From Eutreptiella sp. 'Long Island Sound 2002' (Eukaryota > Protista > Euglenida), in assembly GCA_964036045.1 (NCBI GenBank), contig OZ038379.1, positions 65,472,001-65,536,000 on the forward strand: DNA of 64,000 nucleotides, in the 5' to 3' direction. The stretch's first letter is position 1, and each line of letters begins with the position of its first letter. Positions 37,600 through 64,000 of the stretch are shown piece by piece. The notes under the pieces were generated by a model that made no database searches, was not told the DNA's origin, and saw nothing but the letters and a program-made list of their open reading frames with translations. A program made the translations under genes and the position numbers.

Positions 37600-37756
37600 A
37601 ACCTTGATGCTAACACCCACCCAAACCCTGAACGTAGTCCCAACCCTACCCCTATCACTAGCCCTAGCCATAACCCAAACCCTAACCATAAAACTAACCC
37701 TAGTCCTAGCCCCAACACTAATCCTACCTCTAACCCTAGGCTAGGGTTAGAGTTAT
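37600..37756. repeat. Degenerate interstitial telomere-like (CCCTAA)n tract
   Basis: AACCCT/AGCCCT/AATCCT hexamer variants ending in CTAGGGTTAG; a similar tract lies at about 54920-55020. Confidence 0.6.
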
Positions 37757-38204
37757 CACCAAGCTAGTGGAACCAGTCTTGGTTTTTTAACCCTCTTTAG
37801 TGTCTAGGGTGGACCTAACAAGTTGGGCAAGCAAGCAGCAAGCAGCAAACAGCAAGCTAACACAAATTGGGGGGAAATCACAGCTGCGTCGTGGTGCTTT
37901 GGATTCGCTCAAAATTTTGGTGGATGCTACATATGGGTGTGAGGGACACCCACACAAAGTATGAGCCGGAAACTCAAGGTTCGCGGCTGGGAACAGGCGT
38001 CGCAAGTGCCGGACTTCCATTTCCAATACCCGGAATTTAGGGACGAAATCACCCCTTTTTTGCCCTAAACCGCCCTAGAACGTGCTAAAAACGGCCAAAT
38101 GATGGGAAGTTGTGGCTACTTTACACATGCTGCTAGAGTTCCCCGTGCCGAGGGGCCCTCCAAGGCCCTCTAACTCCACAATATGTCCGGGACCCGCCCC
38201 CCAA

Positions 38205-39560
38205 AGCCCCAGAATTTGTGCACCTTCAAACCCTATCTTGGAGTACGTGGCTCAAAACGCGATTTCAAGTGCACCTAATCCACCCGCAACCGCCCACTTT
38301 TGGTGGTTTCCACCCCTCCAAATTGCCCTAACCTACGCCTAGGCCCCCGTACCTAGGCGCGGTGGGCGACGGCAAGCTGCACGATGTAGCCCAACGAGGT
38401 GGGTGCCAAAACGGGTCAACAAGGTCCACCGGGTGCAAAAAATGACTTTTTTCAAAAATGAACCTGGACCACATGCAATGCGAAAACAAGTGTTTTTGGC
38501 GCGTTTTGACCTCGTGATGACCCTTTTTGCCCCCTCTAAAATCCCAAAATGCCTTGAAAGTGGGCTGTTTTGGGACAAAAAATAGGTAATAGATGGGTCA
38601 AAGATGTTTTTTTCCATAAATGATTGTAGACCGTTCGGGGTGTCCAAACCAGTGTAATGAGCCCATTTTTTAGCCCATTGCAAGCCATTTTGGCCCCTTC
38701 AAAGTCACAAAAAGCCCCCAAAATGAGCTATCTTGGGATGAAAAAGCCCCAAAATGGTGCACATTGGCCGCCGAAAGCCCCAAACCAAAACGAGACCATA
38801 TCTTGGGCTACGTCGCTCAAAGCGTGATTTCAAGCGCATCTAATCCACACGCAACTACCCGCTTTTGGTAGTTTCCACCCCTCAAAATTGCCCTAACCGA
38901 CGCCTAGACCCCCGTACCTAGGCCAAGTGGGCTGTGGCAAGCTGCAAGAGGTAGCCTAAAGAGGTGGGTACCAAAGTGGGTCCACCGGGTGCCAAAAAAA
39001 AGATTTTTTTGAAAAGGGATCTTGGAGCACATGGAATGCCAAAACAAGTGTTTTTGGCGTGCGCTGACCTCATGGTGGCCCTCTTTGGCCCTCCTAAAAT
39101 CCCTAAATGTCTTGATAATGGGCTGTTTTGGGACGCAAAATAGGGCAAAAATGGGAGAAAAATGTGTTTTTTCAAAAATGATTGTAGACCATCTCGAGTG
39201 CCTAAACAAGTGAAATGAGCCCATTTTGAGCCCTTTGCAAGCCACTTTGGCCCCTCCAAAGTCGCAAACTGCCTTGGCCTAGGCCTAGGCTGTTTTTGGG
39301 ACCAAAATTAGTGTGTTTTTCCATAGATGCTTTTTGATTGTTTTGGTTGCACTCACAGGTACAATGGTCCCATCTTGGAAGCATGTTGAGCAACTTTTGG
39401 CCCGTCTCAAGGCCCAAAAAGGCCTGAAAATGGGCCAATTTAGGACCACAAATAGCTCAAATAACGGGTCAAAACCATGGTTTCTCAAAAATGATCCTAG
39501 TCCAGTTGTGCTGCCCAAACGGATGAAAATAGCTCATTTTGAGCTTCTTTTGTGCCGCTC
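38205..39560 (+). repeat. Tandem duplication of an about 560-bp unit (two full units plus a diverged partial third)
   Basis: 38205-38770 collinear with 38770-39270; 39290-39560 repeats the AAAAATGAT..TAG..C..AAAT.G..CATTTTGAGC part. Confidence 0.85.
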
Positions 39561-41929
39561 CCATCCACGTTCCTGTGCGTACCTTGTTTGTCGTTGAACT
39601 CTCCTAGACCATGTTCCTTCCCCCACCAGCTCGGTCCCAACATTCAATCTTGGTTGTTGGGGTGAAAAATGGGGATCAAAGATATGGCAAAAGCAACCAT
39701 GAACGAAATTTCGGGGGATCTTGCTCAATGTAATCAACATTACCGGCACGGCTAAACCAGTGCGCCGCACAGGATAAGGTGAGGTTTACGGTGATGGTAA
39801 GGTTAGAGGGAGGGCAAGGGGAGGTAAGGGGGGCATGTGATGGACCAACACTTTGCCTTGGGGGCATATACCCCCCCAATAACCCCACCTTGAGCACCCA
39901 CCCCCAACCAAGCCTCCCGGACTACCCCCCCCGTGCGGCAAACGCCCCCCTAGACCGCACCCGTGCCCCCCCGAAAGGGGGCATCCGGCAAACTATTAAA
40001 TGGGGGGGCTAGTTGGCGTTGCGAACTCAGGAGGCGCCCCCCTCGAGGGTGCGGGTAATCTTGAAGGCCCTCTTTGTCACCGGTGCCTGCAACCGGCAAA
40101 TCTGCGGCACATGGTCCGCAGGTGCGACGTCGTCGCAACCTTATTCGGCTGTCTCCCGCATGGCCCTCTTGGTTCGCAATCAAGGGTGCCCAATATTGTC
40201 TCTGGGGGTTCCAATGCGTTGAATGCCCCCATACAACGCACATCGTGTGGATGCATCGGCCCCTTGAGCAACGGGGCCCGCTGCCCAAAGATCGTTCCGC
40301 CCTGTCCGTGGATGCGAATCTCGGCCCGTTGCGGGGGCCGTTGCGGGTGCCGTTGCGGGGCAGGTGGAGCACGGTTCCGCGGGGCTCATCAGCATATCAT
40401 TGTTGGGCATCTGGCCCAGTCGCCGAGGCGTGGTGTCCATGTAGCACAACTCTTGGGCGCCTAGTCCCGGCGTAAGTGACCATTGTCCGCTCCGCGATCG
40501 GGGGCTACCTCCCGCCCGTTGCCCTGGCCACTGACGAATGCGCCCCTTTGCCGCGGACAACGTCAGAGATTTTCAGGGGCGCGGCCCCCATTCAGATACG
40601 TGGCTACACCTAGCTGTGCTCCAGCTTTGTGACCGGGCTGGTGTTGAACGTGGAGTTGGAGGGTGTCATAGGGTTGGGGTCCAAAGGGCAAAAATGACAA
40701 AAAACGGTTCAACTGGGCTCAGTGGGATAGGCACTGTCACCATGGGTGCGGTTGGCCATACATTGAACGCACCATGGAGGGGAGTATAGCATGAGTGCAA
40801 GTAGCATATTGTGTACAATTTAGATGAGAGGTACCACCTAGTCATGCTTAGGCCAACCACTGCCAAGGACACGCCGTTGCCCGATAGGCTGTGGGAGACC
40901 ACTGCGGGGTGGTGGGGGGCGTTATGCTCCATTAGGCCACAAGACCTCATCGTGTGCCGCTGAACGCCATCATACTAGGCGGAGGAGCAAGCCACAAAGC
41001 GGCCTGGTAGTGCATAAAGGCGGGGGCGGCCGTGTGTTGACAACGTGGGCGACCATATAATTGCTTAGGTGGAGCACATGGCCATTATTTGCGGCGAGGT
41101 TGTAGGGGATTGAGAGGACACGACATATTGTACATGGTGTGTATCCATGCCATTTCTAACTCTAGTGCATCTAGCCCCCATGTCTTGGCAAGGCATGTGG
41201 TTTTGGTTGGTGGTGCTTCAGATGTTAGTCATAACGGTGTTGCTGGTGCCCGCTTCCTAAGTGGGCTTTGGACTAGGTTGGTGACCCGTGGGTGGTATCT
41301 CTATGCCCTCCACCTAAGGAGGCACCATGAGTACAGCGGGGGGCGGGTGGCGTGGGAGGGTTGCAAGCTAGTTGCTTGCTGTCACTGCCGTGGTTCGTGT
41401 GTGGTGCGTGGGCCAGGACATGCGGGGGTACGCCACCTAATATGATGGTTTTTCCTTCGAAACTGATTCAAGCGTTTTGGGCACTGGGCACTCATGGTGC
41501 ATGCCCTTGTGGTGTCCCTAGTAAGGGAGTAGCCACCCCCAAACCAAGGAAATTGAATCTAGGAGCACCCTTGGTACCTGTATGAAAAGGAGTTCTGTTC
41601 ATCATGCTTTGTTTTATGACAAATGAACGTATTTTGCTCTTGCCAGGGTACCCATGGGCCAGTTTTGTTCCCAACCTGGGGCGCTTGGGGAGCATCCTCT
41701 AGGTGAGGTTTTTCTTGTGGATCGGGGGTTTTTTGTAAAACTTGCCATTTTTGCTAGTTTATGCAAGATATGAAAACATCCTCTCCTGTGCATGATTTGA
41801 TTCATAATGCGATTCCTAATTCACAACTCGGTTTATGGACGCGTTGTTTGTTATATGAACATGTTTTATGAACGCATTTTATGAGCAGATGCACAGGCGC
41901 ACACAACTTGCACAAATTTCAATTTGTTC

Positions 41930-44900
41930 TGTCCACTTGACTGTTTTCTCTTGCTCTTTGTCCTTGCTTGTTGTTGCTGCCCTACACCTCAGGGCTCGGG
42001 CCTATCCGGTCCTCCCAAAGGGGGGCTGTGGCCTAGGTTTTCCCCCCATCCGGGGCCTGGGCATGGGTTTGGGCAAGGGGTTGGGCTGGCGGTTGGGCCG
42101 ACGGTTCGCGATGGGCCATACACCTCCATGGGGGCCGCCTAAGGGGCGGCTTTGAGTTGGGGCAGGGGGGCATCCTTAGCCTAAGTGTTGGGGTCACGCT
42201 TTGCGGGCTTGGGGGCCAGCTCGGCCGGCGGGTTAGCGTCCGGTTAGGGGTTGGGCTTCTTTTTTGCCGGCTTGGCGGCTTTCTTCGCTATAGCAACAGC
42301 TTTTTGCTGCTCCCAACGGCTCACCGCTGCAGCATGAGAGGCATACATCATGCCTCTCGACCCGAAACATCTGCTTTTCCCCTCGGTGTTCCAACCACAC
42401 TCTCCCCCCCCCCCCAACAAAGGTCATAGGCCCCGGCTGGACACCAGTGGTGTAGGGCACAAAAACTTGTGTGCCAAGCAGGGGGTCAAGTGGCCCATCC
42501 CCCTCTAAAAAGGGGGGTTTCTCACTCCGCTTTTGCTGCTGCTGTTGCTGCTATTTCTCCTTCACCCCCTTCCCCTCTCCACAAGGTAGTGCGTTGTCCG
42601 ACGACAACGAGCTGCCCGATTGGAAGGTTTTGCGCTTGCCACGGGGCCCTTTTTCGGTTTGGAGGGTTTCCAGGGAGGTGGGGGGGCACGGCGGGGTGGT
42701 TTGGTGTTGTCGGCGTTGGGGGGGGGGGGGGCTTGCTGGTAAGGGGCTACGGGGATTGGGGTGGGGGGTCAACCCATAACTGGACACCAAGATCTCCTCA
42801 TGAGCACGCCCCTGCCAGCCCAACTCATCTGGGCCTGCCCCACATGACGTAGTCGCTGCCCCAGTGTCCGTTAGGCGCCGGGACCGTTCCGACTCGCGCA
42901 ACCCGGCCAAAATAGAGCACCCCTGCTGCGGGTGGAGGAGGAGGAGCTCGTACAGGGCGGAGAGGGCCATGGTGTACTCACCGTAATGCAGCTGGTAGCG
43001 GATGCGAACACATGCGGCGTGTACGGGGTTCACCTCCAGGTCTTGGATATGTGATTGTACCGTTCATAAAATGCGTTCATTAAAGGCGTTCATAAATCAC
43101 GTTCACGGTTCTTAAACGGGTAGTGCGGTGTCGTTGAATTATGAATGGTGAATTATCAACTCATTATGAACGCATTATGAGCGCAAACACCTTGAAATCC
43201 GGCTCTTGTCCAACCGTGCCCATGGCGCACACGGCAGCCCGCAAATGCGCGACTGCACTTGGACGGGGGCCCTGGGGGGTGCTTGTAGGGGCCGTGGTGC
43301 TGCTTGTGGCCGAGGCTGCCCGGCCAAGGGGCTTGATGGGGCGGGTGATGGTGCGGCCTTGAGCACCCTCTCGTATGAAGCCTCTTTCCCAGGGTCCTAT
43401 AGCCCCCCCAAAAAGGATTCGCACTATGGAATACACTCCCATTTGTGCCCCGAGCAGTGTAGCTTCACCCCCCCTTTTCCCTCCCAGTGGAGGAAGCACA
43501 ATTACCAATAGGACCCCGGCATCCAAGCACCGCGCGGGCTGTAACAACTTTACTTTGTGTCAAGTCCCTCGCACCTATTGGTTCGGGGATGGGGGATAGG
43601 GGTTTTTCCGGCACGGAGCTTCCATGTCCTTGCCCCCCAATGTGTACCCCCCCCTGCACCCTTGTTCCGGATCCGGTGGCGCGAAACTTAGGCCACGCAA
43701 ACTACCCACCTGTTAGGACCCCGTTATGTGCGCTTCCTTACATATTGGCTGTGTTATTTTTGTACGTGTCTTTTTGTGCTGGGGCCGCTACGTCAACAAA
43801 TGGTGCATAAAGGATATGTGTTTTTTGCCTGTTCTGTGCGTGCACAACTGCAATTCCACCTTTCATGTCTCTATGTGCCATTATACCTAGTTGTGGCCGA
43901 AATTTCTTTCAGCCCTCCGTTGATGGGAAGAACGATATGCACATTCCAAGCATTTTATCAAGCTAGACCAAATTTAGTCCACCCCTTCCCCTCCTCCTAA
44001 AATCTATCTCCAAAATGACATTAATTGGTTCTGGACAAAATTTAGGCCCCCCATTGCTATTGCATTGTTCCCACTTGCATTACCCCCACTTGCATTGCTC
44101 CCTTGTGCTTAGGGAATTTAGGAAAGCAATCGTATTGGAATATTTTGCTGTAGGCTTCACACCCCCTGTTGTGTTACCTTTGTTGGGCTTCATGGGATGT
44201 TGTTGTGACTGTTGCTGTAGATGTTTGTGCCTCATGCCTTCATAATGATTGACTTTCATAAATTGGTTGTGTCATTCGCTGTTATTGGTCAAAGGTGGAC
44301 TGAATTTCGTCCAGCTTTCGGATTTCGTGCTTTAATTGTATTATTTGCTGTTATGGTCCAAGCTGGACTAACTTTCTTCCTTGCCCGCCTTTGTCATGAA
44401 TTTGCCAGTCTGCAACACTGTTGCATGGCTGTTGCACATATGTTAGCTATCAATGATTTAGATTTTGTGCGGCCGGCAATATTTTGTTGAGTCTGTAGTA
44501 TAGCGTCTCAAATTTCACTTCAATAGTGCCCCTATGCTTAATTTGCTGTTTCCAAACTGTGTCTGCAACCGCTAATTCTAAAAGACCCAATTCTTCGCCC
44601 ACGGACCACGCCAATGATGAGCCACCTACAAAGCCCAGTGCCAACGGCACTCCCGTGTAGTCCAGCCCTCATCCCACAGCAAGACCCGTGGCCAACACGG
44701 CAATGAATGCCTTTGCGGTCCATTTCACCCCCTCCCAACAGAGTCAGGCTCCAATGTGTATGCTGCCCCGAGGTGGATTCTTAACAGACACCTCAGGCCA
44801 ATGCAGGGAAGGGTGGACCTAAGGGTGTCTAGAAGAGGCCTATTGGTTTGCGCAAGAAGCGCTAGATTGTATGTTCCTTTTTTTTTTTGGCTTGTGTGAC

Positions 44901-46336
44901 GTATATATTAAATTTGTAAAACCCGCTTCTTCGTCTAGCGCCGTCTATGCAAGTGTTGTTGCTATTTTGATACCTCTTTTTTTTATGTTTAAGTTGAGCT
45001 GGACTAAATTTCGTCCAAGTTCGTCTGTTTTGAAGAGCACACAGTGCATTTTCAAGGATGTGCCATGTTTGGCAGAAATTTCGTTTGGGCGCCTCTACAT
45101 TGGCAAATAGAGACCTCATTTAGGATGACCAGTTTTCGGTGACTGTCGGTTGACAGTTGTTTTGCACTTGCACATTGTTTGATGGAATGTCAAAGGTGTG
45201 CCATGCTGTTTGTTGTCATACAGTGCAGTGCTGCATGATCAATATATGTGGGACACTCGAAATGGCCATGTATTAACAAAATTGGGTTTCCAGTGCGGCC
45301 TCTCTCAATACGCATGTATGGTTGTCACGTGGCACTCCCTTGTATGTGTTTGCATGACAATACTATTTTTGAAAATATAAAACACTCCATTTGCCCTCAC
45401 AATGTGCAAGGGGTTATGCTGGTGAAAAATGTACACCCCATTTTTGGGTGTAGCCCCCTTGGGCCAGCATGGCACCTCGTAGTCCAAGCGGAGGGAGGGG
45501 GGGGGGGTAGTTTGCGTGGCCTAAGCAACCGACGGCGAAACGCCCAGCGCAGGGTGATATACGCCAATGTCGGGCTACGAAAAAACGGGGGCATCGGGGG
45601 AGTACCCGTTGTCCAGCGATGCGTGCACTCTGCGGAGCGTTAAGACATTGTGCTAGTTGGCGTGGCTCAGGCCCCATGCATGGCCGGCCTCCGCCCTCAA
45701 CCACGGGTCACAACCAAAAAAGTCCCGCCCCATGTGTCCTCCGCTGCCATCTCCTCCATCTTGGCCTTCAACTCCTCGATCTCCTCCTCGTGTTCCTCCT
45801 ATTTCACCCCCCCCGCTCTGTCCTTCTTCCTCTTCTTGTGCTCCGTCTTCTTCTCCTTCTTCCTCTTCTTCTCCTCCTTCTTCTTCTACTACCTGCTCCT
45901 CATCCTCTCCTCGGTTGAGAGTGCGACGACTCGCTTCTCGCGGAGTTGCCGGCGGTCGGGGATGCAGGGTGAGCGGCGGGGGGTGGCTCAGAGGAATGGG
46001 CTTGAATCGGGGATTGAGGGGGAGTAGGAGCTTGAGGTGGTGGTGGGGGTTGAGCTTAAGCTTGAGCTTGAGGTGGAGCTTGGGCTGTCAGCCGCTACTC
46101 CTATGGACGTAGCAGAAGCAGTTTTTCATAAATTGTTCATAAAACCGGTTCGTAATTCATCCGTTCATAAATGGGTCCACAAAATGACGGCAGTTTCGGT
46201 TTTCTGAACGCCGAATTGTGAACGCAATATGAACACGAACAATGGCAAACAACATGCTACCACGGCGAAGGTCGCCTACGGATTCTCTTGCCTTCTGATT
46301 CTCTTGCACGAACTTTCTAAGTTCGGCGGTGTCCAT
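41930..46336 (-). pseudogene. Multi-exon ORF2 of the transposon, unknown function
   Basis: Starts MDTAELRKFVQE (46336); Q/P- and E-rich exon 46100-45690; VEVNP..RIRY.L...ALSALY.LLLL exon 43050-42790; GT-AG intron 42525-42327; K/A/P-rich last exon. Synonymous differences between copies. Confidence 0.65.
43691..45521. mobile_element. Nested 1.83-kb TIR element with TA target duplication
   Basis: Perfect 17-bp TIR GGCCACGCAAACTACCC (43691-43707) / GGGTAGTTTGCGTGGCC (45505-45521), TA on both sides; host sequence on either side is contiguous in copy D (about 63600-63630). No intact transposase seen. Confidence 0.85.
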
Positions 46337-48177
46337 GGACGGACGAAGAGTGATAAAGCTCAGGGGGCGCAACTGGCGCTTGGGTGGAGGGTGGTTGTGG
46401 GCTGGCGCTTGGAATGGAAGCGGCGGTGCACGCCGCGCTGTGTGGGGTCTTATAGTGCCACACCGGGAGGTCAAATGTTAGAAACCACCATTCCCGCACC
46501 TGTTGGACAACGCTTGCGCCGTGTTCCACTGCACTCTTCGCCGTCCCTCCACCCCTAGAACTATGCCTATGGTACCCCTTCTTCAAAATCTAATTGGTGC
46601 TGTGCACAGCATCCTCTGACTTCTTAGACAATCCCACCCCGCATGCATCCACACTCTCAAGCATTGTATCACAATCCTCTTCGAGGAACAACAAATAGTG
46701 CGACCCTGACTCCGCGCAGCAATGTTCTGGAAGCGCAGCAGCAGACACAAAGGGCGTGGCACAACCGGAACTGGCGAGTACAAAGTGCGTAGCAATCTTC
46801 GGAGACCCACAACCGCTTGCCAAGTGGAGTACTCCTTGGCGTAGCAAGCAGGGGCGCAATCTGTTCCGAGGCAGAGAACGAGTTGTGGGCCTCCTCTTTG
46901 TCCGGTGCGTTGGGCGCCTCCAACCACACACCACATCGGTTCCGGTACACAATTTGGTGTACCTCCTTTGCAACTCCGATGCAAAATCCACAAAAATACG
47001 CAGTTTTTGGCTATGACCAGCGGCAACCGGGAGGTGCATCCTGCCGCATCCAACCTTCAGCCAGTCACCCCATACCCATGATGATTGGTGCTGTTGGATT
47101 GTGTTGTCCTCCGCGCGGCAATGCCATTCCAATTCTTGGCCGTAGGGGCCGCAAGGCACGATTGAAAATACTCCCCACTCGGGGCGCCACGCTGATGTCC
47201 AGCCGCCGCCGCAGACACGGTTGGTGCCCCCTAAGGAGGACTCCTACTGGCACCTAGCTGTCACACGAGTAAAGTTTTTTGCAGTCAATAATGGTTTGCA
47301 TGACCTATGTTCACAAAAGGTGTTCATAATTTGTCCTCATAAAACTGGTTCACCGTTTGTAAATCGGCAGCGCGGCTTTTTATGAATTGTTTTTCGATTC
47401 ATGACCGGGCGAATTACGAAGAACATATGAACACGGAAATGCACACTACAAATCTACACCACCGGAAGCCCAAGTTTGGCCCAAGGCAACCATATCCTTG
47501 TCCCCTGTAACGGCCATGCCGACGACCCATAGGAAGGCGGAGGTTCTCGCCTTTGCCCCAGCGTTCAATAGACCAATCGATAGCTGCGGCCAACTCCAAC
47601 CGGCGCACAGGCGCCATCACCCCACACTACAAAGGTCAAGGGGCGTGCCTAGTCAATGGACTGGCACAGGGCTGGCCGGGATTGCACTCATTGTGCCCAC
47701 GACTGTAAGGGCCAATAGCGACCCGACGGCGGGGGATCGGCACATTCCACCTTGGGGGAACATCGCAAGCGGGGCGCTCGATGATTTCAACGTGGTGTCA
47801 ACTTGGTCCTCAATGGGGATCGGCTATGGAAAGGGCAGGCCGGTGCGAGCGGTGTAGGCAGTGCCCCGGCGGGTGATGTACTGAGGCGACACACGGAAGC
47901 TGGACAGGGGTGCACACAACTCCAAAAGCTGCCCTAGCAGATCGGCTGCGGGAAAGAGAGCCTCCACATACGTACCGATGGCGTGCACCTTGCTTTTTGG
48001 GAGCGCTAGGAGGGGAGTGTGGACCAATGTGTCCCAAAAACGGGCCCGGATGAGGGGGGACAATGACATTCATTGGGCCGGCAGGTCGGAGTAGTTGCTG
48101 TCCTGCAGAACAGTGGCACCACTCAGCCAAACAAGCAACATGTACATCTCCGTGAAGACGGACTAAGGGTAGGATAT
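46317..48177 (-). pseudogene. RAG1/Transib-like DDE transposase, copy C
   Basis: LTFVVWGDG, VLLRGHQPCL, GCTSRLPLVI...FLWILH, GSHYLLF, GLSKKSEDAVHSTN; start codon mutated to ATA, stops and frameshifts; intron about 47445-47306. Confidence 0.75.
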
Positions 48178-51117
48178 AAGAAAATCTTTGGACAAAGAAG
48201 CGTTCATAAAAGCTATTCATAACACATGGTTCGGTTCATTTCTAAAAGAGGAATTTTGAACAATACTACTCTTCATACAGGTACCAAAAGCGCCCCCCAC
48301 CCCATTGATATAGCAAAAGAAGCATCATAGGCCGCTTGGACAGCAAAAGCGGCAAGGCGCCGTGTTTGGGTTTCCTCCATATCGCCATCTCATAAAAGTT
48401 GGCCTTTTCGATTCTGAACCGGTTACATATTGCATGCTTCCCACTGCTTGCTTACTTTCTAGATCATAAAGGTGTTTGCGGGGATTGACTATACTTCATG
48501 ACCAAAAATTACTTCTGGATTGCGGATCCGGATGTATTTGCTTGTTGTGCTTTTCCTTATCGGTGCGCACTTTTGTGGCCTGTTACCTCCACCATCAAAC
48601 AAGCATAAGTGTGAATGATGCGCTACCAAGCATCCCTTTTACTTCCACACAAAGACATCCCAAAGGCACTCTGAATGGTGGGGTCCGCCTCACAAGGCTC
48701 CTCATTTCATGTCAACTCCTCCGAACGTTCCACAGAGGCTCTTGTCCGCCACAGAGCACGCTACAACTCGCTCCATCTCCCATGGGTAGGGGGACAATGA
48801 GGACATGGCCAAAATTGCCACAGTTCCTACACCTCGGACTTTTCAACCGGGTACCACTGCCGGTCACATCTTCTCCAAGCGGTCGGTGTTGATGGCCTTG
48901 CAACCGGGTGAAGGATCGCACCACTTGCTCTCAATGAAGGGGGTAGCGTGCGAAAAAAGTAACCTCGGTACGCGAAATTCAGCCCGGTACGGGAGGGACA
49001 AGTGTCGCAGTTAAAAAGGAAATAACGACCACTGTTGAAAAGTGCCCGGTTTCCAGGGTATGCCCAGGACCATTGTTGGGGTCGAAAAATAGCATGTTAG
49101 TGGCGCACAGCTAATCGCGCATGAGTGATTGCGGTCCTGGTTGACGGTTTTTGGAAGCTTAGAGCTGCCACTGCAGCTATGCCGCAATCTAGAGGTCCCC
49201 CTACTTGGGCAGTACACTGCTTTTTTTAGGCCACATTGCCCAGGTGGGGCGCCCTAGGGGCGCCGACCACACGTGTGCGTCTTCCTCAAACGTTGTTCCT
49301 TCATTTCGAATATTGGTCCTAGTCGGCAGTACGTCCGTTAGACAGGTGGCCAATGGTAACCTCAGGGACTCATTTTGGTTGCACATCTCAAGAGTAGTTG
49401 GTCCGTTGTTGCTTGGTCGTGCTAAATGATCGTGCTTTTCAGTGTGACCGCGCAATGTGGTCACACACATGGCTGGCCGGAGGTCCCGGACAGTGCGAGC
49501 ATTCTTGTTAAACCCACTCCTCCGCGTTTTCGTTGTAGACAATACAAATCTTTCACTTTTCCACAAATGGCTCACATGCGCACATCTCCGCCCTGCTTGT
49601 CTCCCATGAGCGGTGCCACAATGTGGCGCAACTGCACCGTCTCGACGAAGAAGTCACAGTGCCCCTGTGGTAGAGGCCTGCCGATAGTGTAGGCCGAGAG
49701 AGAAAGGCACTAGGTTTCCACTGCTCAGGTGCCCGGCATATGGATTGGATGTTGTACGGCAAAGTCGTGCCGGAGGTCTTTTAGAGTAGTGTCGCCTTAG
49801 ATACTGCCCTAATGAACATGCCCATCCGCGTAGACAAGCATCCGGAGCTCCTAGCTGCTCTGTGGCTCGCCTGTGCATTGGCTGCTTGTGGCGCACCCGT
49901 TGTCGCTTGTGCCCACTCTCCGGGTCTCAGACCTCGATGACTGCTCCGATTGCCCTTAGCGGTTGCAAGTGTCCCTGGGTGCTTCCCAGATAGGTCCCCA
50001 CGTTGTAGCAGCTGCGGCGGATGTACCCCGTCGTGCGGGGCAGCTATGAGAAGCCGCTTTTGAATGTCTGTGACAGACGAGGGCTTTTCGCCCTCATGTG
50101 CCATACGGATGGTCGTTGGGACGACATAGCGGGCCGTTGGTGGCCTTGTTTGCCGTGCCTTGATCTGCTACCCCGGAAGCATGCAGCTAGGCTGAACAGC
50201 TGGATGAACATCGCCATTCGTCCAACCGACATAGAGCCATATTACCGGCAAAAGAGCCATGTGCTGTCCCGGTGCCTCCGCAGGGCCAAGGACAAGGGGT
50301 ACGTTGCCCACGAGCCGTTAGGCCAATTACACGAGGACCTCCGAAAGTTCGGGTAGCGTTGCGAGAGCTACAAGGCGCTCGCTGTTGCCATCGCAGACAA
50401 AGACCGTCCTCTTGTTGACGTCGGGCAGCACGGCTTCTTAAGGCTGCGTGGGCTCGAGCCAAAATGTCGGGTCACCTCTGCGATGCATGCAGCATGCCGT
50501 CCTAGGATGCCTGGGACAGGGATGATGCCCCTCTAGCACCACTAGGCGTTGGGGGGTCCAAGGTGTTGCAAGCGCTCGACAACGCCGGGTACCTACCCAG
50601 CTACGACACCGGCCGAAGGCACGTTGAGGGAGCCCCCCTGTGTAAGCTCCAACGTGCTGCCCACTCTGTCCTGGCTTGTGGAGGCCCTAAGCCACTTCGT
50701 GGGTGTCCATGTGTAGCACCTGTGCATGCACTAAATCCATGTGGAGGACGTCATCATTGTCTCTCGCGAGGCAGTCGCGGTGGGATTGTGCGCTATGTGT
50801 TGCCGGCACGCCATGCCCTTGGCCATGGTGACGCCGTGGAGGCTTTGGCCCAACAGCTGGAGGAGCACCCCGATACGTACCAAGCCACCAACCGTGCAGC
50901 GGTTGTGTGTCCAGCTCCCCATACAGAGCAGGAGAACTACACCATCCCTATGTGGGTCATCCGCACATGCGGCAAGTTCAAGGCGCGGCATTCGCATGCT
51001 GTGTGGAAGCCTATGGCGGAGCTCTGCCTCAATGCTGCATTTCAGGACCGTGGTTTCCTCCTATCCGCAGATGCGAATGGTGATACACGGCGGTCCCGCG
51101 AGATGGAGGCCGCACTA

Positions 51118-51359
51118 CATGCTTAGGGTACTAGCACCCGCTGGTGTATGCCTTGGATTCTACACTGTGCATTCAAAACAGATGAGTTTGGAATGTGTGA
51201 AATCTTTGCCCCCCCTAATTGATGAAACGAGTGTCCCACATGCTTAGGGTACTAGCACCCGCTGGTGTATGCCTTGGATTCTACACAGTGCATTCAAAAC
51301 AGATGAGTTTGGAATGTGTGAAATCTTTGACCCCCCTAATTGATGAAATGGGTGTCCCA
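51118..51359 (+). repeat. Recent 121-bp tandem duplication
   Basis: 51118-51238 and 51239-51359 are nearly identical. Confidence 0.95.
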
Positions 51360-51431
51360 CATGTTGGGGGAGAATACCCTCATTTTGCAGGGGGGGGTTG
51401 TCTTTTGGTGTAATGTTGGAGCTACAGAACC

Positions 51432-55124: not shown

Positions 55125-57376
55125 CCCTTGGTACACGCTAGAATACCCAATCTCGTTCTAGCCTAGAACCGGCTAGAGCGGCTAGAATGAAAAAAAGAGG
55201 GGGATACCCCCCCCCCCCCCGCATGGGGGCGGGGAGGGGGGGGGATGAGGTGTCTAACCTCGACCCCCCTATCCATACTCGGGGGCCCATACTTTTTTTT
55301 CACAATTTCACAGTTTTCACCTGATTTTGCAGTCCAAAAATTTTTCGTTCTAGCGGTGTTCTAGCTACGTTCGCTAGAACGTCGCTAGAACATTCTAGCC
55401 TAGAACACAATCAGAACAAAAACATTCATGCATGTGTCGCATCTAAGGGACACCAAAGTGGGGGTGGGGTGGAGGGGTAATACACATACACTAATAAAAA
55501 TCAACACACTTGACGCATGCATAGTCATCTGTGCCCCCCCCCCCCCACACACTTTGGCATAGGCATATGCCCGACACAACACACAGCACAAGATGTCACG
55601 GGGGGGGAGGGTGGGCCAAGAGGTCAAACACAAGCACCGCACACACACACCCTCAATGTCAAGCTATCAGCCTCCCCCCCCTCTTTCCATGTTGTGGTCT
55701 GGGTTGTGGGGCCCCTGCTTGTTTTGCCTATGGTTAGGGAGGGTATCCATTTCCTCTTTGCAGTTGTGCTGGTTTTTTTTATTGCCATGCGGATGTCAAG
55801 AAGTTGGTACACAGTGACACCAAGAGGTAGGTGTGTTACTCCTTCCCTCCTCCCTGCCATGTACACGTGTGTGACCGTGTGTCTGTGGTATGGGGTTGCC
55901 TAGTGCACTGCTGTAGCGTCAGGAGCTGTGCTGTGCGGGTCAGTGGTATGCTTTGTCCCTCCTCCTCCAAGTTTATGCAACCCCCCCCCCCCCCCCCTGT
56001 GTGCACTGGTGATTGGCTTGTTGCTTGGTTGGCTGTTGGTTTTCGGGTTGCTTGGTTGGTTGTTGCGTTGGTTGGTTGGTTGTTGGTTGATTGGTTCTGG
56101 CACATCCGAGTCTGGCTGGTTGGTTGGTTGGTTGGTTGGTTGGTTGGTTGGTTTGTTGGTTGGTTGGTTGTTGGCTAGTTGCTGGGGTGTATGTGTGTGT
56201 ATTGTCTGCACACATGCTGTGTGGTGTTGCAGCAAAGTGTGTCTGTGTGTAAGCCTGTATGTGCAGCGATTGCAAAGGTCCTGGGGGGGGTTGCGCACAT
56301 TTCATTTTGGTGTTCTGGGCGCGTTCTAGCGGGGTGTTCTAGTGGCGTTCTAGCGAGGTGTTCTAGCGGCGTTCTAGGGAGCAAAGCGGCGTTCTAGCGG
56401 CGTTCTAGCGAGGTCTTCTAGCGGCGTTCTAGGGAGCGAAGCGGCGTTCTAGCGGCGTTCTAGCGGCGCCGCTTCGCTCCCTAGAACGCCGCTAGAAAAC
56501 CTCGCTAGAACACCGCTAGAACGCCAAAATGAAATGTGCACAACCCCCCCAAAGACCCTTGCAATCGCTGCACATACAGGCTTACACACAGGCACAGTGT
56601 GTAGCAACACCACACAGCATGTGTGCGGACAATACACACATACACACGCCAGTAAGTAGCCAACAACCAACCAACCAACGAACCAACCAACCAACCAACC
56701 AACCACCTCACCAACCAGCCAAACACAGCTGTGCCAGAACCAATCAACCAACAACCAACCACACAACGCAACAACCAACCAAGCAACCCGAAAACCAACA
56801 GCCAACCAACCAACAGGCCAAGTACCAGTGCACACGGGGGGGGGAGGTTGCAAAACCTGGGAGGAGGGGGGACAAAGCATACCACTGACCCGCACAACAG
56901 CACAATGCATAACCCAGCGGGGGGAGTGGGGGGGCAATGGAGGAGGGATGGTGGGAAGGGAGAACCTGTACACTAGACAACCCCACACCACAGACACACA
57001 TGGCAGGGAGGACGGAAGGAGTAACACACCTACCTCTTGGTGTCACCGTGTACCCACTTCTTGACATCCACATTGGAATAAAAAAAACCAGCACACCTGC
57101 AAAGAGGAAATGGATACCCTCTCGAACCTTAAGCACAACAAGCAGGGGCCCCACAACCCAGACCACAACATGGAAAGGGGGGGGGGGGGGCTGATAGCTG
57201 GACATTGAGGGAGTGTTTGTGCGGTGCTTAATTAGTTAATTGTTTTTGGCCCCTTACCCACCCTCCCCACCCTTGACATTGTATGTTGTTTGTTGTGTTC
57301 TGCCTATGCTTTTGCAAAACTGTGTGTATGCTACGGGGGGGGGGGGCATATGCGTATGCATGCGTCAAGTGTGTTG
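55125..57376. mobile_element. Foldback-like element: about 0.9-kb diverged inverted arms around a GTTCTAGC array, preceded by a CCCTTGGTACAC terminus
   Basis: 55502-56467 is the reverse complement of 56468-57376, including (TTGG)n/(CCAA)n; centre AGCGGC|GCCGCT; terminus and small hairpin at 55125-55405. Confidence 0.8.
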
Positions 57377-58015: not shown

Positions 58016-60015
58016 ATAAAAAAAACAAATTATCACAGTGGGTTGGGGGGTGCACAACACGAACACTCCATGTGTACTGTGAAACAGTCATTTCTCTTTG
58101 CTTGGGTTTCTTGTGGATTCTTGTTGCGTTTTCTCTATGCCCCGTGTAAAGTGGATGTGGGGGCAGAGGCGCAGCCGCTTTATGCGCAAGTACGTTTTTT
58201 TTGTAACTTCGGCATGCGGGCAGCATGCAAGGAGGGTGTGCAAGTTCTGCATGTTGAATGCCCCGTCGACGGTTGCGGCTGTGTTGGCAGTGGAGGCACA
58301 ACATGCGCCCCCAATGTGGGGAGCAACACTCGGACCTCTAGGTGGCTGATGAACGCGCAGAGCAAAGGGACCGGGGCCTTTGGAGCTTGTTGTCTTGGGG
58401 GAGGGGGAGGGGGCTTTTGGGGACAATAAGAGGAAATCTGGGTGGATGAAGCTCGAAAGGAAGCAGAAGCGCACAAAAAAGCGCACTACGATCCGCAGTG
58501 CCCTGCGCGGCGACACGTAGGAGAGGGTGGAGGAGGGGGGGAGCGGCCTTGCGCCGCCTAGGCGCTCGGTTGAAAAGTTGGACAACTCGGAGGCCCCAGC
58601 AACCCTTGAGAGGGGATTTGACCAACTGCGGAGGAACCTAAGGCGGGCAGAGGCACGGGACCTCGCCTTTGTGCGTGGTGACTCCTCGTGCAACTCGCAA
58701 TCCTTCCCGGGGTCCCCTTCCTTTGCACCGCCTTCAGATGGAAGTAGGGGCCCGAAACAAAACATTTCCCAAGGTTTTGCCATGCCCAGGGACCCGTTGG
58801 CGACTCGGTCAACTATCTCAGTGCCTAGTACGAGTAGTTGCCCCCCCCCCGCCCCGCCCCTTTTCGTGTCCCCCCACCCACACTCCACTGGCCTGCCAAG
58901 TAGGCTGCTGGCACCTCTGACCCTCTCTATACAGCTCGGCATGATGTCGAGCCCTATCATCGTGGCTTCTTCAGTGCCCTGCAGCGGTTCCTTGTGACAC
59001 GAGGACCTCGGCAGGGGGGACATACTTGGGGGGTTGTGGGGGGGATGGTGGTGGCACAGTGGTGGCCATCAGCGCCTTTGCCAGGGCTTCCACTTCCCCC
59101 TGGTATGGAGTTAATGAAAGGTGGGGTCTACGAGGAGGACTTGCTTTCGGTGGAGGAGGTGTTGGTGCCTGGATGGATGGAGGGAGAGAGGGGGGTGGTG
59201 TCAACATCAGGGGCTGGGGCGAGGCCCATTCGCTGAGACACCTCTCAGCATCAGAGTCACACGGGGGCGATGGGCGTTGGTGCCCAAAACGTAGGACCTC
59301 TTGCAAATACCCAAAGACCCCCCCACCCCACAAAACCCACTTTCCAGAAGTTCTACGGTACCAAGACATTGCAGGTCATCCGGGATATCCACAAGAGGGG
59401 GGGGGGGGTTCAATATTTTGTAGACGGGATGTTGAACCGCCGAGCCATGTATCGGTTTGCGGTTCCATATCCTACGAAGGAACGCCTGCTAATATGACAT
59501 GGGGGCATGCGGATTGGCCGTTCACGTTTGCTCAGCAGGGACGAGGAGCACGCAGCACGGGTGCTCGAAACCCTCTTTGCTGCCTCCAAACCCCCCGTGT
59601 ATCTCCAAGCCCGCCCAACCCCCCGCCGTTCGCCTCGTCGACCACTCCCCTCATCCCCCCCCCGCCCCCGCCACTAATCACATGAGGTTGACCCGGTTTA
59701 CCCGCCACTGCTGTGCATCACTGCTGCCAGTTTTTTCAGCCCCAAAGCCGCTGTGGACCGCCTTCGCCTCCTTCCCTGCTTACCGGTGGCAGCTTGGTTG
59801 GTTGCTGCCACGACCCTCCTAGTCTTCTCCCCGCCACAGCGGCCCCCATTCGGTTCGTTGCTCCGAGCGCAACCCCCCCAATAGCGACGCCGGACTTCAA
59901 CGAGACGTTCCAGTCTCCAAGTCTTCGGCGACACCTGAGGAAACAGGTTTTTACGCTGCTTTTCAACACCACCAGCCAATTGTGCACAATGGAGAAACGC
60001 CACAGTATTGTCTAA

Positions 60016-61297
60016 TGGCATTTGACGCGATTCGCCCTGCCACCGGGCAATGCATGCACAAGTGAGGGCATTATGTGTACTCTAAGAGACGCCGCACCGA
60101 ATGGAACAGGAACCGGGTCCATTGGGGCCGGGCCCTCGGAATGTCGGGGGGGGTGGGGGCACAAGTTGGACTTTTTGGGGAGTTGTTGGCCTTTTTTGCC
60201 CATGCTGCGCCTAATTGGCTAGAATGAAAACCCTTGCAGTGCTGACTGATTCCATTTGACGTGTTGCGCCTTGCCAACAAGGTATGCATGCACAGGTGAG
60301 GGCATTATGTGTACGCCACGGGACACTGTAGGGAACAGAAAAGCAATTGGGTTCATCAGGCCGCGCACTTGGGGAACCGGGAGGCACAAGTTGGACTTTT
60401 TGGGGCGTTATGGGCCTTTTTTGCCCATACTCTATGGCATTAGATCGACATAGCAGGACAGAAGAAGGAGAAGCGGCAACGGGATAAGACATGGAAGGTA
60501 GAGAACGAGAAGAAGGAGAGGGAAGACAAGGAGAAGGAGCAGAAGGAGAAGCGGCCGAAGGATAACATTGTGCCGTCGGAGGAGAAGGCGGACAATGAGA
60601 AGAAGGAGAAGGAGAAGGAGAAGGAGAAGGAGAAGGAGAGGGAGGAGCACCCCACCCCCGCCGCCCTCATGGAGGAGCGGCTACTGCGCAGCATTCCTAG
60701 CGATGAGGTGCGGATCCCCCAACAGCCCTCATCCCCGCCTTTCGGCCTCCCAATAGGCCCACCGGATGAAGATTCTCCAGTTCCAAGCGTGAGAACCTCG
60801 ACACTACGGTGCCACAACGCTGCTTTTCAACGCCACTATTCCAGTCTCTACTCTCTACTTTCGTGCATGCCCATACTGCGCCTAGTCCATGGCAATGGGA
60901 ACGCCTGCAACACTGTCTGATGGCATTTGTCGTGAAGTGCCTTGCCAACGTGGAATGCATGCATAGCTGAGGGCATTATGTGCACACCAAGGGACGCCGG
61001 AGCCAATGGAAAAGAAATTAGGTCCATCGGCGACAAGCAGTGGGAGAACTGGAGGCCACAATATGGAGCCTTTGGAGGGTTATTGGCTTCCTTGCCAATA
61101 ATGCGCCTCGCTGGTGCAATGAAAACCCCTGCACCGCTGAGTGATGGTATTTGACGTGTTATGCCCTGCCCACGGGAAAGTCATGCACATTTGAGGGCAT
61201 TACGTGTGCGCTAGGGGACGTCCCAGCCAATGGAAAGGAATGGGTTCCATCGGGGACGGGTACTGGGAGAATTGGAAGGCACAAGCTGGACCCTTTG
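60016..61297 (+). repeat. Diverged about 230-bp repeat, four units (60016, 60251, 60921, 61145), split by a K/E-rich low-complexity insert
   Basis: Shared CATTTGACG..ATGCA..GAGGGCATTA(T/C)GTGT..CACAAG(T/C)TGGAC; unit 4 is cut by the transposon at 61298. Confidence 0.85.
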
Positions 61298-64000
61298 CCC
61301 TAGGTACACTTATGAAAAGTAATATTGTTCATAATTCATTTTTCATATATGAAAAATTCATATATGAACCATGAATTATGAACAGCCTTTATGAACGCCT
61401 CTTTGTCCACAAATTTTTTTATGTCTTACCCTTGCTCCATCTTCACGGAGCCGAACATGATGCTTGGTCGGCTGAGTGGTGCCACTAGTCTTCGGGACAG
61501 CTAGTGTTCCGACCTGTTGGACCAATGGATGTCATCGTCCCCCCTCATCCTGGCCCGTTTCACGTAGGCAATGGACCACAATCCCCTTCTGGCGGTCCAC
61601 AAAACCAAGGTGCAGGCCATCCGTACGTATGCGGAGGCCCTCTTTCCCGCACCCCATCTGATAGGGCTCCTGTTCGAATTGGGTGCACCTCGGTCCGGCT
61701 TCCGTGTGTTGTCTGAGTACATCACTTGCCGGTGTGACGCCTACACCGCCCGCAACGGGCTGCCCTTCCCACGGCCCATCCCCACACGGGACCAATTTGA
61801 CGCAACGTGGAAGTCATTGACCGCTCCGCTTGCGTTGTCCCCCCCCCCCGGTGGAATATGCCGACCCCCCTTTGTCGGGTTGCTGTTGGCCCCTACGGTC
61901 ATGGGCACAATACCTACACTCCCGGCCAGCCCTGTGCCAGTCTATTGACTGGACCCGCCCCCTCACCTTTCTTGTGCGGGGTGACGGGTGACCTTGCGCC
62001 GGTGGGAGTTGATCGCAGCTATCGGTGGGGCCATTGAACCATGGGGTAAACGCGCACACACCCCCCTTCCTATGGGGCATCGGCATGGCCGACGTAGGTG
62101 ACGAGGATATGGTTGCCATGGGCCATATTTGGGCTCAGGGGCGGCAAGTTGGTAGTGTGCATTTTCGTGTTCATAAGTTGTTCATAATTTGCGCGTTCAT
62201 AATTCGAAAAGTGCCGTCATAAAACGCCGTGCTGCCGATTTGTGAATTATGAACACGTTTTTTGAACACCAGTTATGAACAGGCTTTATGAACACAGGTC
62301 GTGCAATCCATTATTGACTGCAAAAAATTTTACTCTTGCGACAGCTCGGTGCCGGCAGCGGTCATCCTTGGTGGGGAGCAGCCGTGGCTGGCGGCTGATG
62401 GGCATCAGCGTGGCTCCCCAATTGGGAGCATTTTCAACGAGGCCGTGCGGGACAATATGGCCAAGCGGTTGAATGACGTCGCTGCTCGGAGGACAACTCA
62501 GTCGGATGCCAACAATCATTGTCGTTTTTCAGGTGACCCGCAAAAGTTTGGATGCGGCAGGATGCACCGGCGAGCCGTTGCTGGTCATAGCCAGAAACCG
62601 GGTATTTTTGTGCATTTTGCACTGTTGCATGGCCTTCGGGAGGCTTTTCATGGCCTTTTTGGAGGCGCAGGTGGGAAATCATCCCCTTGAGGTTGCCGGG
62701 GGGGGGTACAAAAAACCGGTGTGGCGTGTGGTTTGGGGCGCAGAACGCACCGGACCGGGAGGACCTGTTCTGGGACTGGGAGCAGATGGCTCCGCTGCCT
62801 GCATGCGTCGAGGAGGACCCACCGTGGCAAGCGGTTGTGGGGCTCTGATCATTGCTACGCACTGTGTACTAGCCCCTTCCGGTTGTGCCACGCCCTTCGT
62901 GCCGACTTGTTACTGCTGCGTTTCGGGAACACTGCTGCGGGGAGTCGGGGTCGCACTTTTTGTTGTTACTCGAAGAGGACTGTGATACAATGCTTGAGAG
63001 TGCGGATGCATGCGGGGTGGGATTGGCTGCCATGTCGGGGGATGTTGTGGAGAGCACAAATTTCATTTTTGAAGGAGGGATACAATGGGCATATTTCCAG
63101 GGGTGGGGGTGCGGGTAACAGTGCAGTGTAACGGGAAGGAATGGTCGTGTAGCACGTTTGGGAATGGTGGTTTCCAACCTTTGACCTGCCGTTGTTGCAC
63201 TATAACACCCCACACACCGCGGCGTGCACCGCCGCTTCTCCTCTGAGCACCACCCCCCAAGCACCCTCCACCCACGCGCCCTCTGCGACCCAGCTTTATT
63301 ACTCTTCACCCATCCATGGATTCCGCCGAGCTGAGGAAGCTGCTGGAGGAGAGTAACATGGCGACCTCGCCCTGGTGGTATGCTGCCTGTCGGCTGTCGT
63401 TCGCGTTCATATTGCGTTCATAATTTGGTGTTCATGGCCCCGTGGTTGAGGGGGGAGGCCGGCCATGCATGGGGCCTGAGCCACGCCAACTAGCGCAATG
63501 TGCTGACCCTCCCCTGGATGCAGGGAGCGCTAAACAGTGGGTACTCCCCCGATGCCCCCCTTTCTTCGAGCCCCGTGGTCACTTACATTGCCCTGCGCTA
63601 GGCAATTCGCCGTCTTTTGCGGCATCGCATCCGCAACAAGGGTGCGGGGGGGGGCCTGTCGGCACACAGGGGGGGCATCGGCATGGAAGCCCCTGCCGGG
63701 AAAGCCCTTGTCCCCCATCCCCGAACCAATTGGGGCTGGGGATTTGACGCAGCCCAAAATTTCTACGGGCCCACGGGGGGCCTTGACGCGGGGGTCCCAT
63801 TGAAAGCCGTGCTTCCTCCACTGGGAGGAAACGGCGTGGGTGAAGCTGCAGCGCTCCGGGCGCAAGTTGGAGTGCATACCCCAGTAGGAATCAATTTTCG
63901 CGGGGCTATATGTCCCGGGACAGGTGGCCTCGTACCAGGGGGCTGTCGAGCCATCCCATGAAGCCCCTTGGCCGGGCAGCCCCGGCCACCACCAGCACCA
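61298..64000 (+). mobile_element. RAG1/Transib-like transposon copy D (runs off the window end)
   Basis: Terminus CCCTAGGTACACTTATGAAAAG, transposase 61421-63356, ORF2 start 63316, internal deletion near 63436, then collinear with 45710-43300. Confidence 0.85.
61421..63356 (+). pseudogene. RAG1/Transib-like DDE transposase, copy D, with GT-AG intron 62148-62297
   Basis: FLVRGDG (Asp 61983-61985), VILGGEQPWL (62376-62378), GCTGEPLLVI..VFLCILHCC, GSHFLL, MSGDVVESTN (Glu 63050-63052). Removing the intron joins WAQGRQ to VVQSIIDCK in frame. Several stops and frameshifts. Confidence 0.8.

Follow-up and report, generated by a model that had tools for sequence, protein, structure and literature searches.

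Why should the gene of a transposase be interrupted by hairpins made of the same short motif that marks the ends of its own transposon? This question is raised by a stretch of 64,000 nt from the euglenid Eutreptiella sp. 'Long Island Sound 2002' (contig OZ038379.1, positions 65,472,001 to 65,536,000), referred to here as the window, to which the coordinates of all features refer unless another locus is named. Repeat analysis and blastn recovered in this window three copies of one DNA transposon with terminal inverted repeats (TIRs): copy A (11054-13395, minus strand), copy B (41568-48290, minus strand), and copy C (61298-64000, plus strand). Inside the element's transposase gene lie short modules bordered by GT and AG, in which forward copies of the subterminal motif are followed by reverse copies. 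It is considered fairly probable, from the comparison of copies and relatives, that these modules are true introns made of element-specific, probably transposase-binding arrays.

Motif arrays at the ends and inside the element

The module at 62148-62297 in copy C (hairpin intron 1, plus strand) holds forward copies of GTTCATAA at 62169, 62180, and 62195, followed by three to four reverse copies (exact ones at 62247, 62273, and 62286, plus a degenerate one), between a GT at 62148 and an AG at 62296-62297. Excision of its 150 nt preserves the reading frame (...HIWAQGRQ + VVQSIIDC...), and its folding energy is -44.8 kcal/mol (z = -3.1), with values of -31 to -35 kcal/mol (z = -1.9 to -3.5) for the counterparts of this hairpin in the window. 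The motif counts, the frame join, and the folding bear out the initial annotation, which had described the segment as a GT..AG unit of forward and reverse repeats whose removal keeps the frame, and had proposed RNA folding as a check.

Exact matches to GTTCATAA number 30 in the window versus 1.16 expected, a count reached in 0/100 shuffles, and its forward-then-reverse arrays are confined to the three element copies. A scan without a preset motif, for any 7-mer occurring at least twice forward and then at least twice in reverse within 220 nt, returned seven clusters in the 64 kb and none in shuffled sequence; four of the seven consist of the GTTCATAA motif, all in the three copies. Rfam gave no match at the gathering score anywhere in the window. 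The subterminal motif of the element measures 8-9 nt, (C)GTTCATAA, and the hairpins share it, as the initial annotation had held, with both subtermini and with the TIR, where TGTTCAT lies inside the repeat of about 40 bp, some 28 nt from each tip. The positions that the annotation gave for other hairpins (46122-46240 and 43062-43185 in copy B, 12533-12650 in copy A) and for the subtermini are all correct; its list of hairpins had missed the copy B orthologue of the first one (47305-47453) and the half of the second one left in copy C (63375-63435). In this second hairpin the motif copies are unequal in number, three forward versus five reverse, and this arrangement is conserved in four of five complete copies of the hairpin (degenerate in copy B), which suggests a constraint on the motif beyond pairing alone.

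Better preserved loci of the window family are found elsewhere, namely L001 (5'-truncated), L002, L009, and L010. All fetched loci of the family come from ENA assembly ERZ25074135, and at least 167 relatives were counted for the N-terminal open reading frame (ORF) of copy C, almost all of them on ENA contigs of megabase scale; on these matches, the family is a high-copy TIR DNA transposon. L002 and L009 hold complete copies, 94% identical to each other. The most complete one, L009 6949-11885, carries five modules of forward and then reverse motif copies (the 5' subterminus, three internal hairpins, and a hairpin in the 3' untranslated region), with centres about 0.9-1.3 kb apart. The TIR of about 40 bp has the tip CCCT[TA]GGTACC, and seven ends have the termini CCCT[TA]GG...CC[AT]AGGG, with CCCTAG in the relative L007. 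The target-site duplication (TSD) is of 2 bp in the two youngest complete copies (TA/TA in L009, TG/TG in L002). A TSD of 5 bp or 8 bp was discarded as the younger copies show 2 bp; those of the window copies are too decayed to read. At both subtermini the short motif occurs in direct and inverted orientation, which is the architecture of CACTA-type elements.

As a separate observation, several internal deletions end in or beside hairpins: copy C has half of the second one, L002 lacks the left arm of the third, and L001 ends at the third. The repeated arrays may favour template switching or slippage, giving rise to shorter derivatives.

Evidence for the internal modules as probable introns

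The three internal modules of L009 measure 150, 157, and 141 nt, and the excision of each joins long flanking ORFs in frame. The 150-nt and 141-nt modules give phase 0 joins, and removal of the 157-nt module shifts the frame exactly as needed to join a 361-aa ORF to a Pro-rich ORF. The modules occupy identical sites in six of the six copies examined. The initial annotation had also entertained independent insertions of miniature inverted-repeat elements, absent from most copies; these shared sites, together with an intron 1 codon common to four lineages, speak against that idea and mark the modules as old components that the element had from its ancestors.

The splice sites are largely preserved. 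Across the six copies, the GT and the AG of the first hairpin are each kept in five, while the second and third hairpins have AG/GT-type donors and cacAG acceptors in all younger copies (a slash marks the splice border), and GT and AG are also present in the relatives L007, L008, and L011. Within the window, the sites lost include the donor GT of the first hairpin in copy B and the acceptor AG of the third in copies A and B. This last acceptor had escaped the initial annotation, and it is indeed gone from both copies, but it can be read as an intact AG in the younger ones (cacAG/GTCGTGGAC). At the borders of the modules, neither CCCTTGG-type termini nor a target duplication was found, only the ordinary AG/G(T) splice context.

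An intron-less relative, P0249, is continuous across the site of the first hairpin (...LWQHNLSAIQAIID...). The spacing from Trp to Asp is of 13 residues in P0249, in the spliced window family, and in L007, L008, and L011, and the window family matches the spacing of P0249 only if the module is removed at the GT and AG given in the initial annotation. Were intron 1 read through, translation would end at a stop within about 11-55 codons. In the structure model of P0249, the junction falls inside a helix (residues 86-109) that sits between the strand of the first Asp (GDG, exon 1) and that of the second (GGD, exon 2); the model thus puts intron 1 within helix alpha-1 of the RNase-H-like core, downstream of the first catalytic Asp and upstream of the second. 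Since the junction lies inside one helix between two catalytic strands, synthesis of two separate polypeptides is unlikely. The contigs that read across this site (L003-L006) still carry other hairpins, and are therefore genomic. A search with P0249 for more intron-less or spliced relatives returned one partial relative only, P0352, which adds one more lineage. According to these alignments, the modules must be removed to give the conserved protein, and the two separate genes, ORF1 and ORF2, of the initial annotation are probably a single multi-exon transposase gene with three short GT-AG introns, each taken up almost wholly by an inverted array of the subterminal motif.

Related lineages with their own motifs

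The same design was recognized in relatives drawn from other metagenomes (L007, L008, L011, and L003). L007, with 44% protein identity to the window family, has the motif GTTCAAA in its TIR and 5' subterminus, in intron 1, and in intron 2. L008 (36%) holds TTCTAG in intron 1, and L011 (39-41%) holds CGTTATAGCG in three hairpins, intron 1 included. L003, which encodes P0249 (36-37%), has no hairpin at the intron 1 site; its motif, GTTCTAC, forms a hairpin intron about 85 codons upstream and another right after the catalytic exon. L012 (7335-10950), with 42% identity to P0249, carries clusters of the palindromic motif TAGCGCGCGCTA at similar intervals, and as this locus and the window belong to one assembly, that assembly harbours two or more families of the transposon group.

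Intron 1 interrupts the same phase-0 codon in the window family (150 nt), L007 (185 nt), L008 (294 nt), and L011 (198 nt), four lineages of 36-46% protein identity with a different motif in each; in L007, the length of 185 nt implies that read-through would also shift the frame. The motifs GTTCATAA, GTTCAAA, GTTCTAC, and CGTTATAGCG emerged from an unbiased k-mer count, and TTCTAG and TAGCGCGCGCTA were added by inspection. Homopolymers aside, no k-mer ranks above the lineage motif in L007, L003, and the window family; in L011, only the simple repeats (CA)n and poly-C do. The named motif of one lineage is nearly absent from the elements of the others. In both lineages where an end is available (the window family and L007), the end motif is the intron motif, and L007 uses the same motif variant in its TIR, 5' subterminus, and both introns. 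Moreover, the TIRs of L007 and the window family can be aligned (shared CCCT and TGAAA.GTAG), and the first motif copy, which in L007 has the variant of that lineage, stands at the same offset in both. All modules across the lineages fold as hairpins (z = -2 to -11). Taken over these alignments, at least five related lineages have kept the design, each with a motif peculiar to it, and end motif and intron motif co-vary.

Nature of the transposase

Pfam returned no matches for the long window ORFs tested, and 36 ORFs or exons, taken from the window, from L007, L008, and L009, and from homologues in databases, gave nothing meaningful. For the 361-aa exon P0144, 468 matches were obtained, with relatives at 30-49% identity, and the resulting alignment (A1) reveals the conserved blocks GGDxPW, C-x2-H, PDGEE, DVVESxN..LK, and RGGG; among its Cys and His residues, C-x2-H (CILHC) is conserved and REHC less so. 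The AlphaFold2 model of P0249 has a predicted local distance difference test (pLDDT) score of 71, above 85 over most of residues 130-350, and a predicted TM-score (pTM) of 0.67. When this model was compared with the PDB by Foldseek, the top 39 hits were RAG1 (best E 1.5e-5, probability 1.0, 366 columns, TM 0.45), followed by HzTransib and, more weakly, by the P element transposase. Profile searches against PDB sequences gave a weak RAG1L match with A1 (E 0.37) and an irrelevant match with a second alignment, A2. The model accordingly presents an RNase-H-like DDE core with a RAG1/Transib-like insertion domain.

This fold, the 2-bp TSD, and the subterminal repeats place the element near the CACTA/Mirage/Chapaev/Transib (CMCT) group of DDE transposons, defined by 5'-CA...TG-3' termini, a TSD of 2-5 bp, and the patterns C(2)C and H(3-4)H (PMC12730594). 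Like members of this clade, it is a TIR element with a short TSD, with arrays of a short motif in both orientations at both subtermini, and with a DDE core in which a large insertion separates the second Asp from the Glu; the best structural matches of the model are RAG1 and then Transib. Contrary to them, its termini are CCCT...AGGG, its Cys/His pattern is C-x2-H(-C) with a later H-C, and it matches no Pfam transposase family. As its termini fall outside the CMCT definition, and its Cys/His spacing probably does too, the element is treated here as an unclassified relative and not as a member. We know of no described CMCT member with subterminal motif arrays in the introns of its transposase gene.

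Beyond the catalytic part, a C-terminal exon stretch at L009 10960-11200, equivalent to about 42250-42500 in copy B and about 11800-12000 in copy A, reads GEQVFAPYPDGVYPGVV...VWVEYPGEKEMFRVERHLL and resembles by eye a Tudor or chromo-barrel-type domain, for which Pfam gave no match. It is followed by a Lys/Pro-rich tail and is interrupted by a poly-G frameshift.

Weighing the explanations

Several points weigh against the reading of the modules as introns made of transposase-binding arrays. Their splicing is inferred from sequence alone, and several apparent frameshifts in homopolymer runs may be errors of long-read assembly. When copies are compared region by region, exons, introns, and untranslated regions diverge alike, without a sign of hairpin-specific constraint. 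The structure model of exon 1, the putative binding region, has a pLDDT of 58, a confidence too low for a structure search. In addition, different modules of one lineage have similar non-motif loops (CAAAATGCGTTTTTTG in both L007 introns, CTGCCGTCATAA in the first and second hairpins of the window family), so that gene conversion or module replacement could explain part of the match between ends and introns without selection for binding. Finally, the absence of intron 1 from L003, which has a hairpin intron at another site, indicates that the positions are not fixed.

Some of these features would also be expected if the modules had an introner-like origin and no further function. Introners are transposon-derived spliceosomal introns of algae and other eukaryotes (PMC12130899; bioRxiv 10.1101/2022.06.06.494994), and in such a scenario miniature derivatives of the element's ends would have inserted in the transposase gene, carrying or creating splice sites, and would have become harmless by splicing. 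The modules resemble introners in being short, inverted-repeat-bearing, transposon-related sequences that would serve as introns in algal hosts, where transposon-made introns are well documented (PMC12130899). The left border of the third hairpin (GTATTTGCGTTCATAATT) resembles TIR positions 22-40 (GTAGTATTGTTCATAATT), and the loop of the first has CGAGAACTG in common with the 3' module, so that the likeness to the subterminus extends beyond the motif; the shift of the intron in L003 by about 85 codons points to gain and loss, and the window has, at 55347-55406 and 56300-56525, free-standing arrays of a sister motif, CGTTCTAG. Introners, however, are dispersed in host genes with ends and target duplications of their own, whereas the modules are fixed inside the element's gene, at the same sites in 6/6 copies, lack element termini and any duplication beyond AG/G(T), and co-vary with the element's ends across lineages. 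One intron 1 codon occupied by four differing motifs would demand either very old insertions co-evolving with the ends or repeated hits on one site, which appear impossible. Nor was any free-standing GTTCATAA module found in the 90-100 kb or so of non-element sequence taken together from the window and from the flanks (about 60 kb) of the four same-family loci L001, L002, L009, and L010. An origin of this kind without further function is therefore regarded as rather unlikely.

It could also be the RNA structure that is selected, with the identity to the end motif being secondary, if the modules were mirtron-like precursors of small RNAs targeting the element or were excised under the direction of their structure, without the spliceosome. 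A long hairpin is indeed found in every module of every lineage, whatever its motif, and the motif itself is palindromic or nearly so in two lineages (TAGCGCGCGCTA and TTCTAGAA). Excision triggered by paired inverted repeats in RNA exists in animals as SOS splicing, which removes DNA transposons from mRNAs, apparently independently of the spliceosome, as a defence of host genes (PMC12779559). Paired inverted repeats likewise flank the transposon-derived segments described here, whose removal from the mRNA is predicted; unlike SOS splicing, which is known from animals only, they have conserved GT/AG borders and lie within the element's own gene. The canonical GT and AG are kept at a fixed phase in all lineages, and motif copies are retained in arms that hold unequal numbers of them and whose spacers are mostly non-complementary. 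Furthermore, the same motif forms the subterminal arrays, and subterminal repeats have an established function in DNA recognition in CACTA and Ac elements. Selection for RNA structure as the main cause is thus decidedly unlikely.

Chance matches or decayed non-coding spacers between separate small genes, with nothing spliced, could be suspected from the pseudogenic state of the window copies and the about equal conservation of their three reading frames, but are very improbable, as the catalytic core is split across the module (first Asp in exon 1, second Asp and Glu in exon 2) with the junction inside one helix, the intron-less relative is collinear residue by residue, and the 185-nt intron of L007 would shift the frame on read-through.

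Proposed mechanism and comparison with other systems

If the modules are introns made of binding arrays, the motif would be bound by a protein that the element encodes, most likely by the transposase through its helical N-terminal part, by analogy with the subterminal repeats of CACTA and Ac; the motif copies kept without a pairing partner in the second hairpin (three forward versus five reverse) support a protein-binding site. The internal arrays would act in cis on DNA, as sites for the assembly of the transposition complex or as repressor sites, and would be tolerated inside the gene only because they are spliced out, while in RNA their inverted layout could fold into a hairpin and bring the two splice sites close to each other. 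Retention of any intron is predicted to expose an in-frame stop within about 10-55 codons, so that an unspliced mRNA would give a protein without the catalytic core downstream of that intron. Intron retention could in this way yield a non-catalytic N-terminal protein.

A choice between a full transposase and a shorter DNA-binding product is known from the retention of the third intron (IVS3) of the P element and from the alternative splicing of TnpA and TnpD in En/Spm. Similarly, retention of intron 1 here would leave an N-terminal protein without the rest of the catalytic core. However, the regulated introns of those elements are not built from the transposase-binding motif, and the regulation proposed here is a prediction. 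Internal transposase-binding sites are likewise known from the transpositional enhancer of phage Mu, a region that doubles as operator, and from the internal inverted repeats of the P element. The element of Eutreptiella shares with them putative transposase-binding sites far inside the element, besides those at its ends, although the Mu and P element sites are neither introns nor hairpin arrays.

A broader proposal, possible without being probable, is that these elements form a new lineage of RAG1/Transib fold, widespread in algal metagenomes, in which the end motif is embedded in the gene as regular hairpin introns that co-evolve with the ends. Under this proposal, the introns would work as DNA elements in the assembly or repression of the transposition complex and, at the same time, as a splicing gate coupling the concentration of the transposase to its own synthesis. 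In the literature consulted, introners, SOS splicing, and the CMCT classification are described, and no transposase-gene introns built from the element's own subterminal motif were found. A TIR/DDE transposon with subterminal repeats and introns is of a known kind; there is a real chance that its regulatory architecture is new.

Structure of the window copies

The three window copies are 77-88% identical to one another. Conservation between them is about equal in all three reading frames, which marks them as decaying relics, and the comparison of synonymous and non-synonymous differences by frame gave no usable coding signal, as under neutral decay. By this measure, all three are dead relics.

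Copy C, cut by the end of the window, is 87% identical to the best outside copies (blastn, and MAFFT alignment with A, B, L001, L002, and L009). All its parts lie on the plus strand. Its 5' TIR (61298-61337; CCCTAGGTAC...TGTTCATAATTC) already includes the first motif copy, as judged from seven termini aligned by eye and from the matching layout in L007, and the 5' subterminal array (61311-61396) is itself palindromic. The exon 1 remnant (61571-62147), aligned with the intact exon 1 of L007, L008, and L011, comprises the N-terminal helical region and the first catalytic Asp (RGDG), and is disrupted by a stop and a poly-C frameshift. Intron 1 separates it from the exon 2 remnant (62298-63374), in which GGD with the second Asp, C-x2-H, PDGEE, DVVESxN..LK with the Glu, and RGGG are assigned from the intact 361-aa P0144, alignment A1, and the model with its Foldseek matches. 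Of hairpin intron 2 only the 5' half is left (63375-63435), adjoining a deletion of about 500 bp whose missing segment is present in B, L001, and L002.

The poly-C run of exon 1 (61835-61850; L002 9495-9503, L009 about 7495-7503) varies from 5 to 11 C among copies, which switches the frame: most copies read into a short ORF ending ...VPVY, and a minority read into the catalytic region, like the relatives. This variation may be real slippage or a homopolymer error of long-read assembly.

Copy B is full-length and decayed, with 77-80% identity to the others. On the minus strand it holds the 5' subterminal array (48202-48262), hairpin intron 1 (47305-47453), whose donor GT is mutated to AT, hairpin intron 2 (46101-46260, core 46122-46240), hairpin intron 3 (43048-43190), with the donor AAG/GTGTTT retained and the acceptor mutated, and the 3' subterminal module in the 3' untranslated region (41795-41890), whose L009 equivalent folds with z = -4.5. 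It also contains an AT-richer insertion of 1.84 kb (43687-45524), absent from the other copies and outside the family consensus. Like this foreign insertion, a second one of 5.8 kb in L010 (9951-15814) lies in the exon 3 region and is absent from the other copies. Copy A is a 2.3-kb internal-deletion derivative without the equivalent of 43307-47679 in copy B; it retains, on the minus strand, the 5' subterminal array (13297-13366), hairpin intron 3 (12520-12657; donor GAG/GTATCT retained, acceptor mutated to AA), and the 3' subterminal module (11275-11372).

Other features of the window

In composition the window is eukaryote-like, with a GC content of about 55% and numerous poly-C/G runs. A near-perfect palindrome of about 1.6 kb (55630-57235, centre at about 56467) has in its middle an array of the sister motif CGTTCTAGCG, with about 13 forward copies at 56309-56468 and then four reverse copies at 56470-56525. 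Its arms are non-coding, rich in GGTT repeats, and without transposase homology. Either a non-autonomous relative of foldback type or an inverted duplication that started at a hairpin array could account for it. About 220 bp to its left, a small free-standing hairpin (55347-55406) is made of two forward and three reverse copies of this sister motif (GTTCTAG). At 25649-25849 (minus strand), a weak tblastn match of the distant member P0264 (E 5e-4, 30% over 67 aa) covers the C-x2-H region and may be a very old third related transposase relic.

Degenerate telomere-like CCCTAA repeats are found at 37642-37810, at L007 50-66, and at L003 1757-1775; in L007 they adjoin the 5' TIR, which itself begins with CCCTA, and in L003 they are part of the intron that follows the catalytic exon. 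Other local repeats include a 135-nt unit in four copies immediately upstream of copy C (59989-61252), a 121-nt unit duplicated in tandem (51117-51363), and a duplicated segment of about 560 bp (38230-39227). As for the host, a chlorophyll a/b-binding protein gene is found near one of the fetched loci of the family, which marks it as photosynthetic.

Implications

If the reading proposed here is true, introns would be kept in a mobile element for a role in DNA, and not as by-products, with a sequence that tracks the end-recognition motif across lineages. The element would offer a natural system for asking whether a transposase can use binding sites within its gene to regulate how this gene is transcribed or spliced. 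It would also add unclassified algal elements, invisible to Pfam, to the RAG1/Transib/CACTA-related transposases, and would bear on how transposon-derived sequence becomes an efficient intron.

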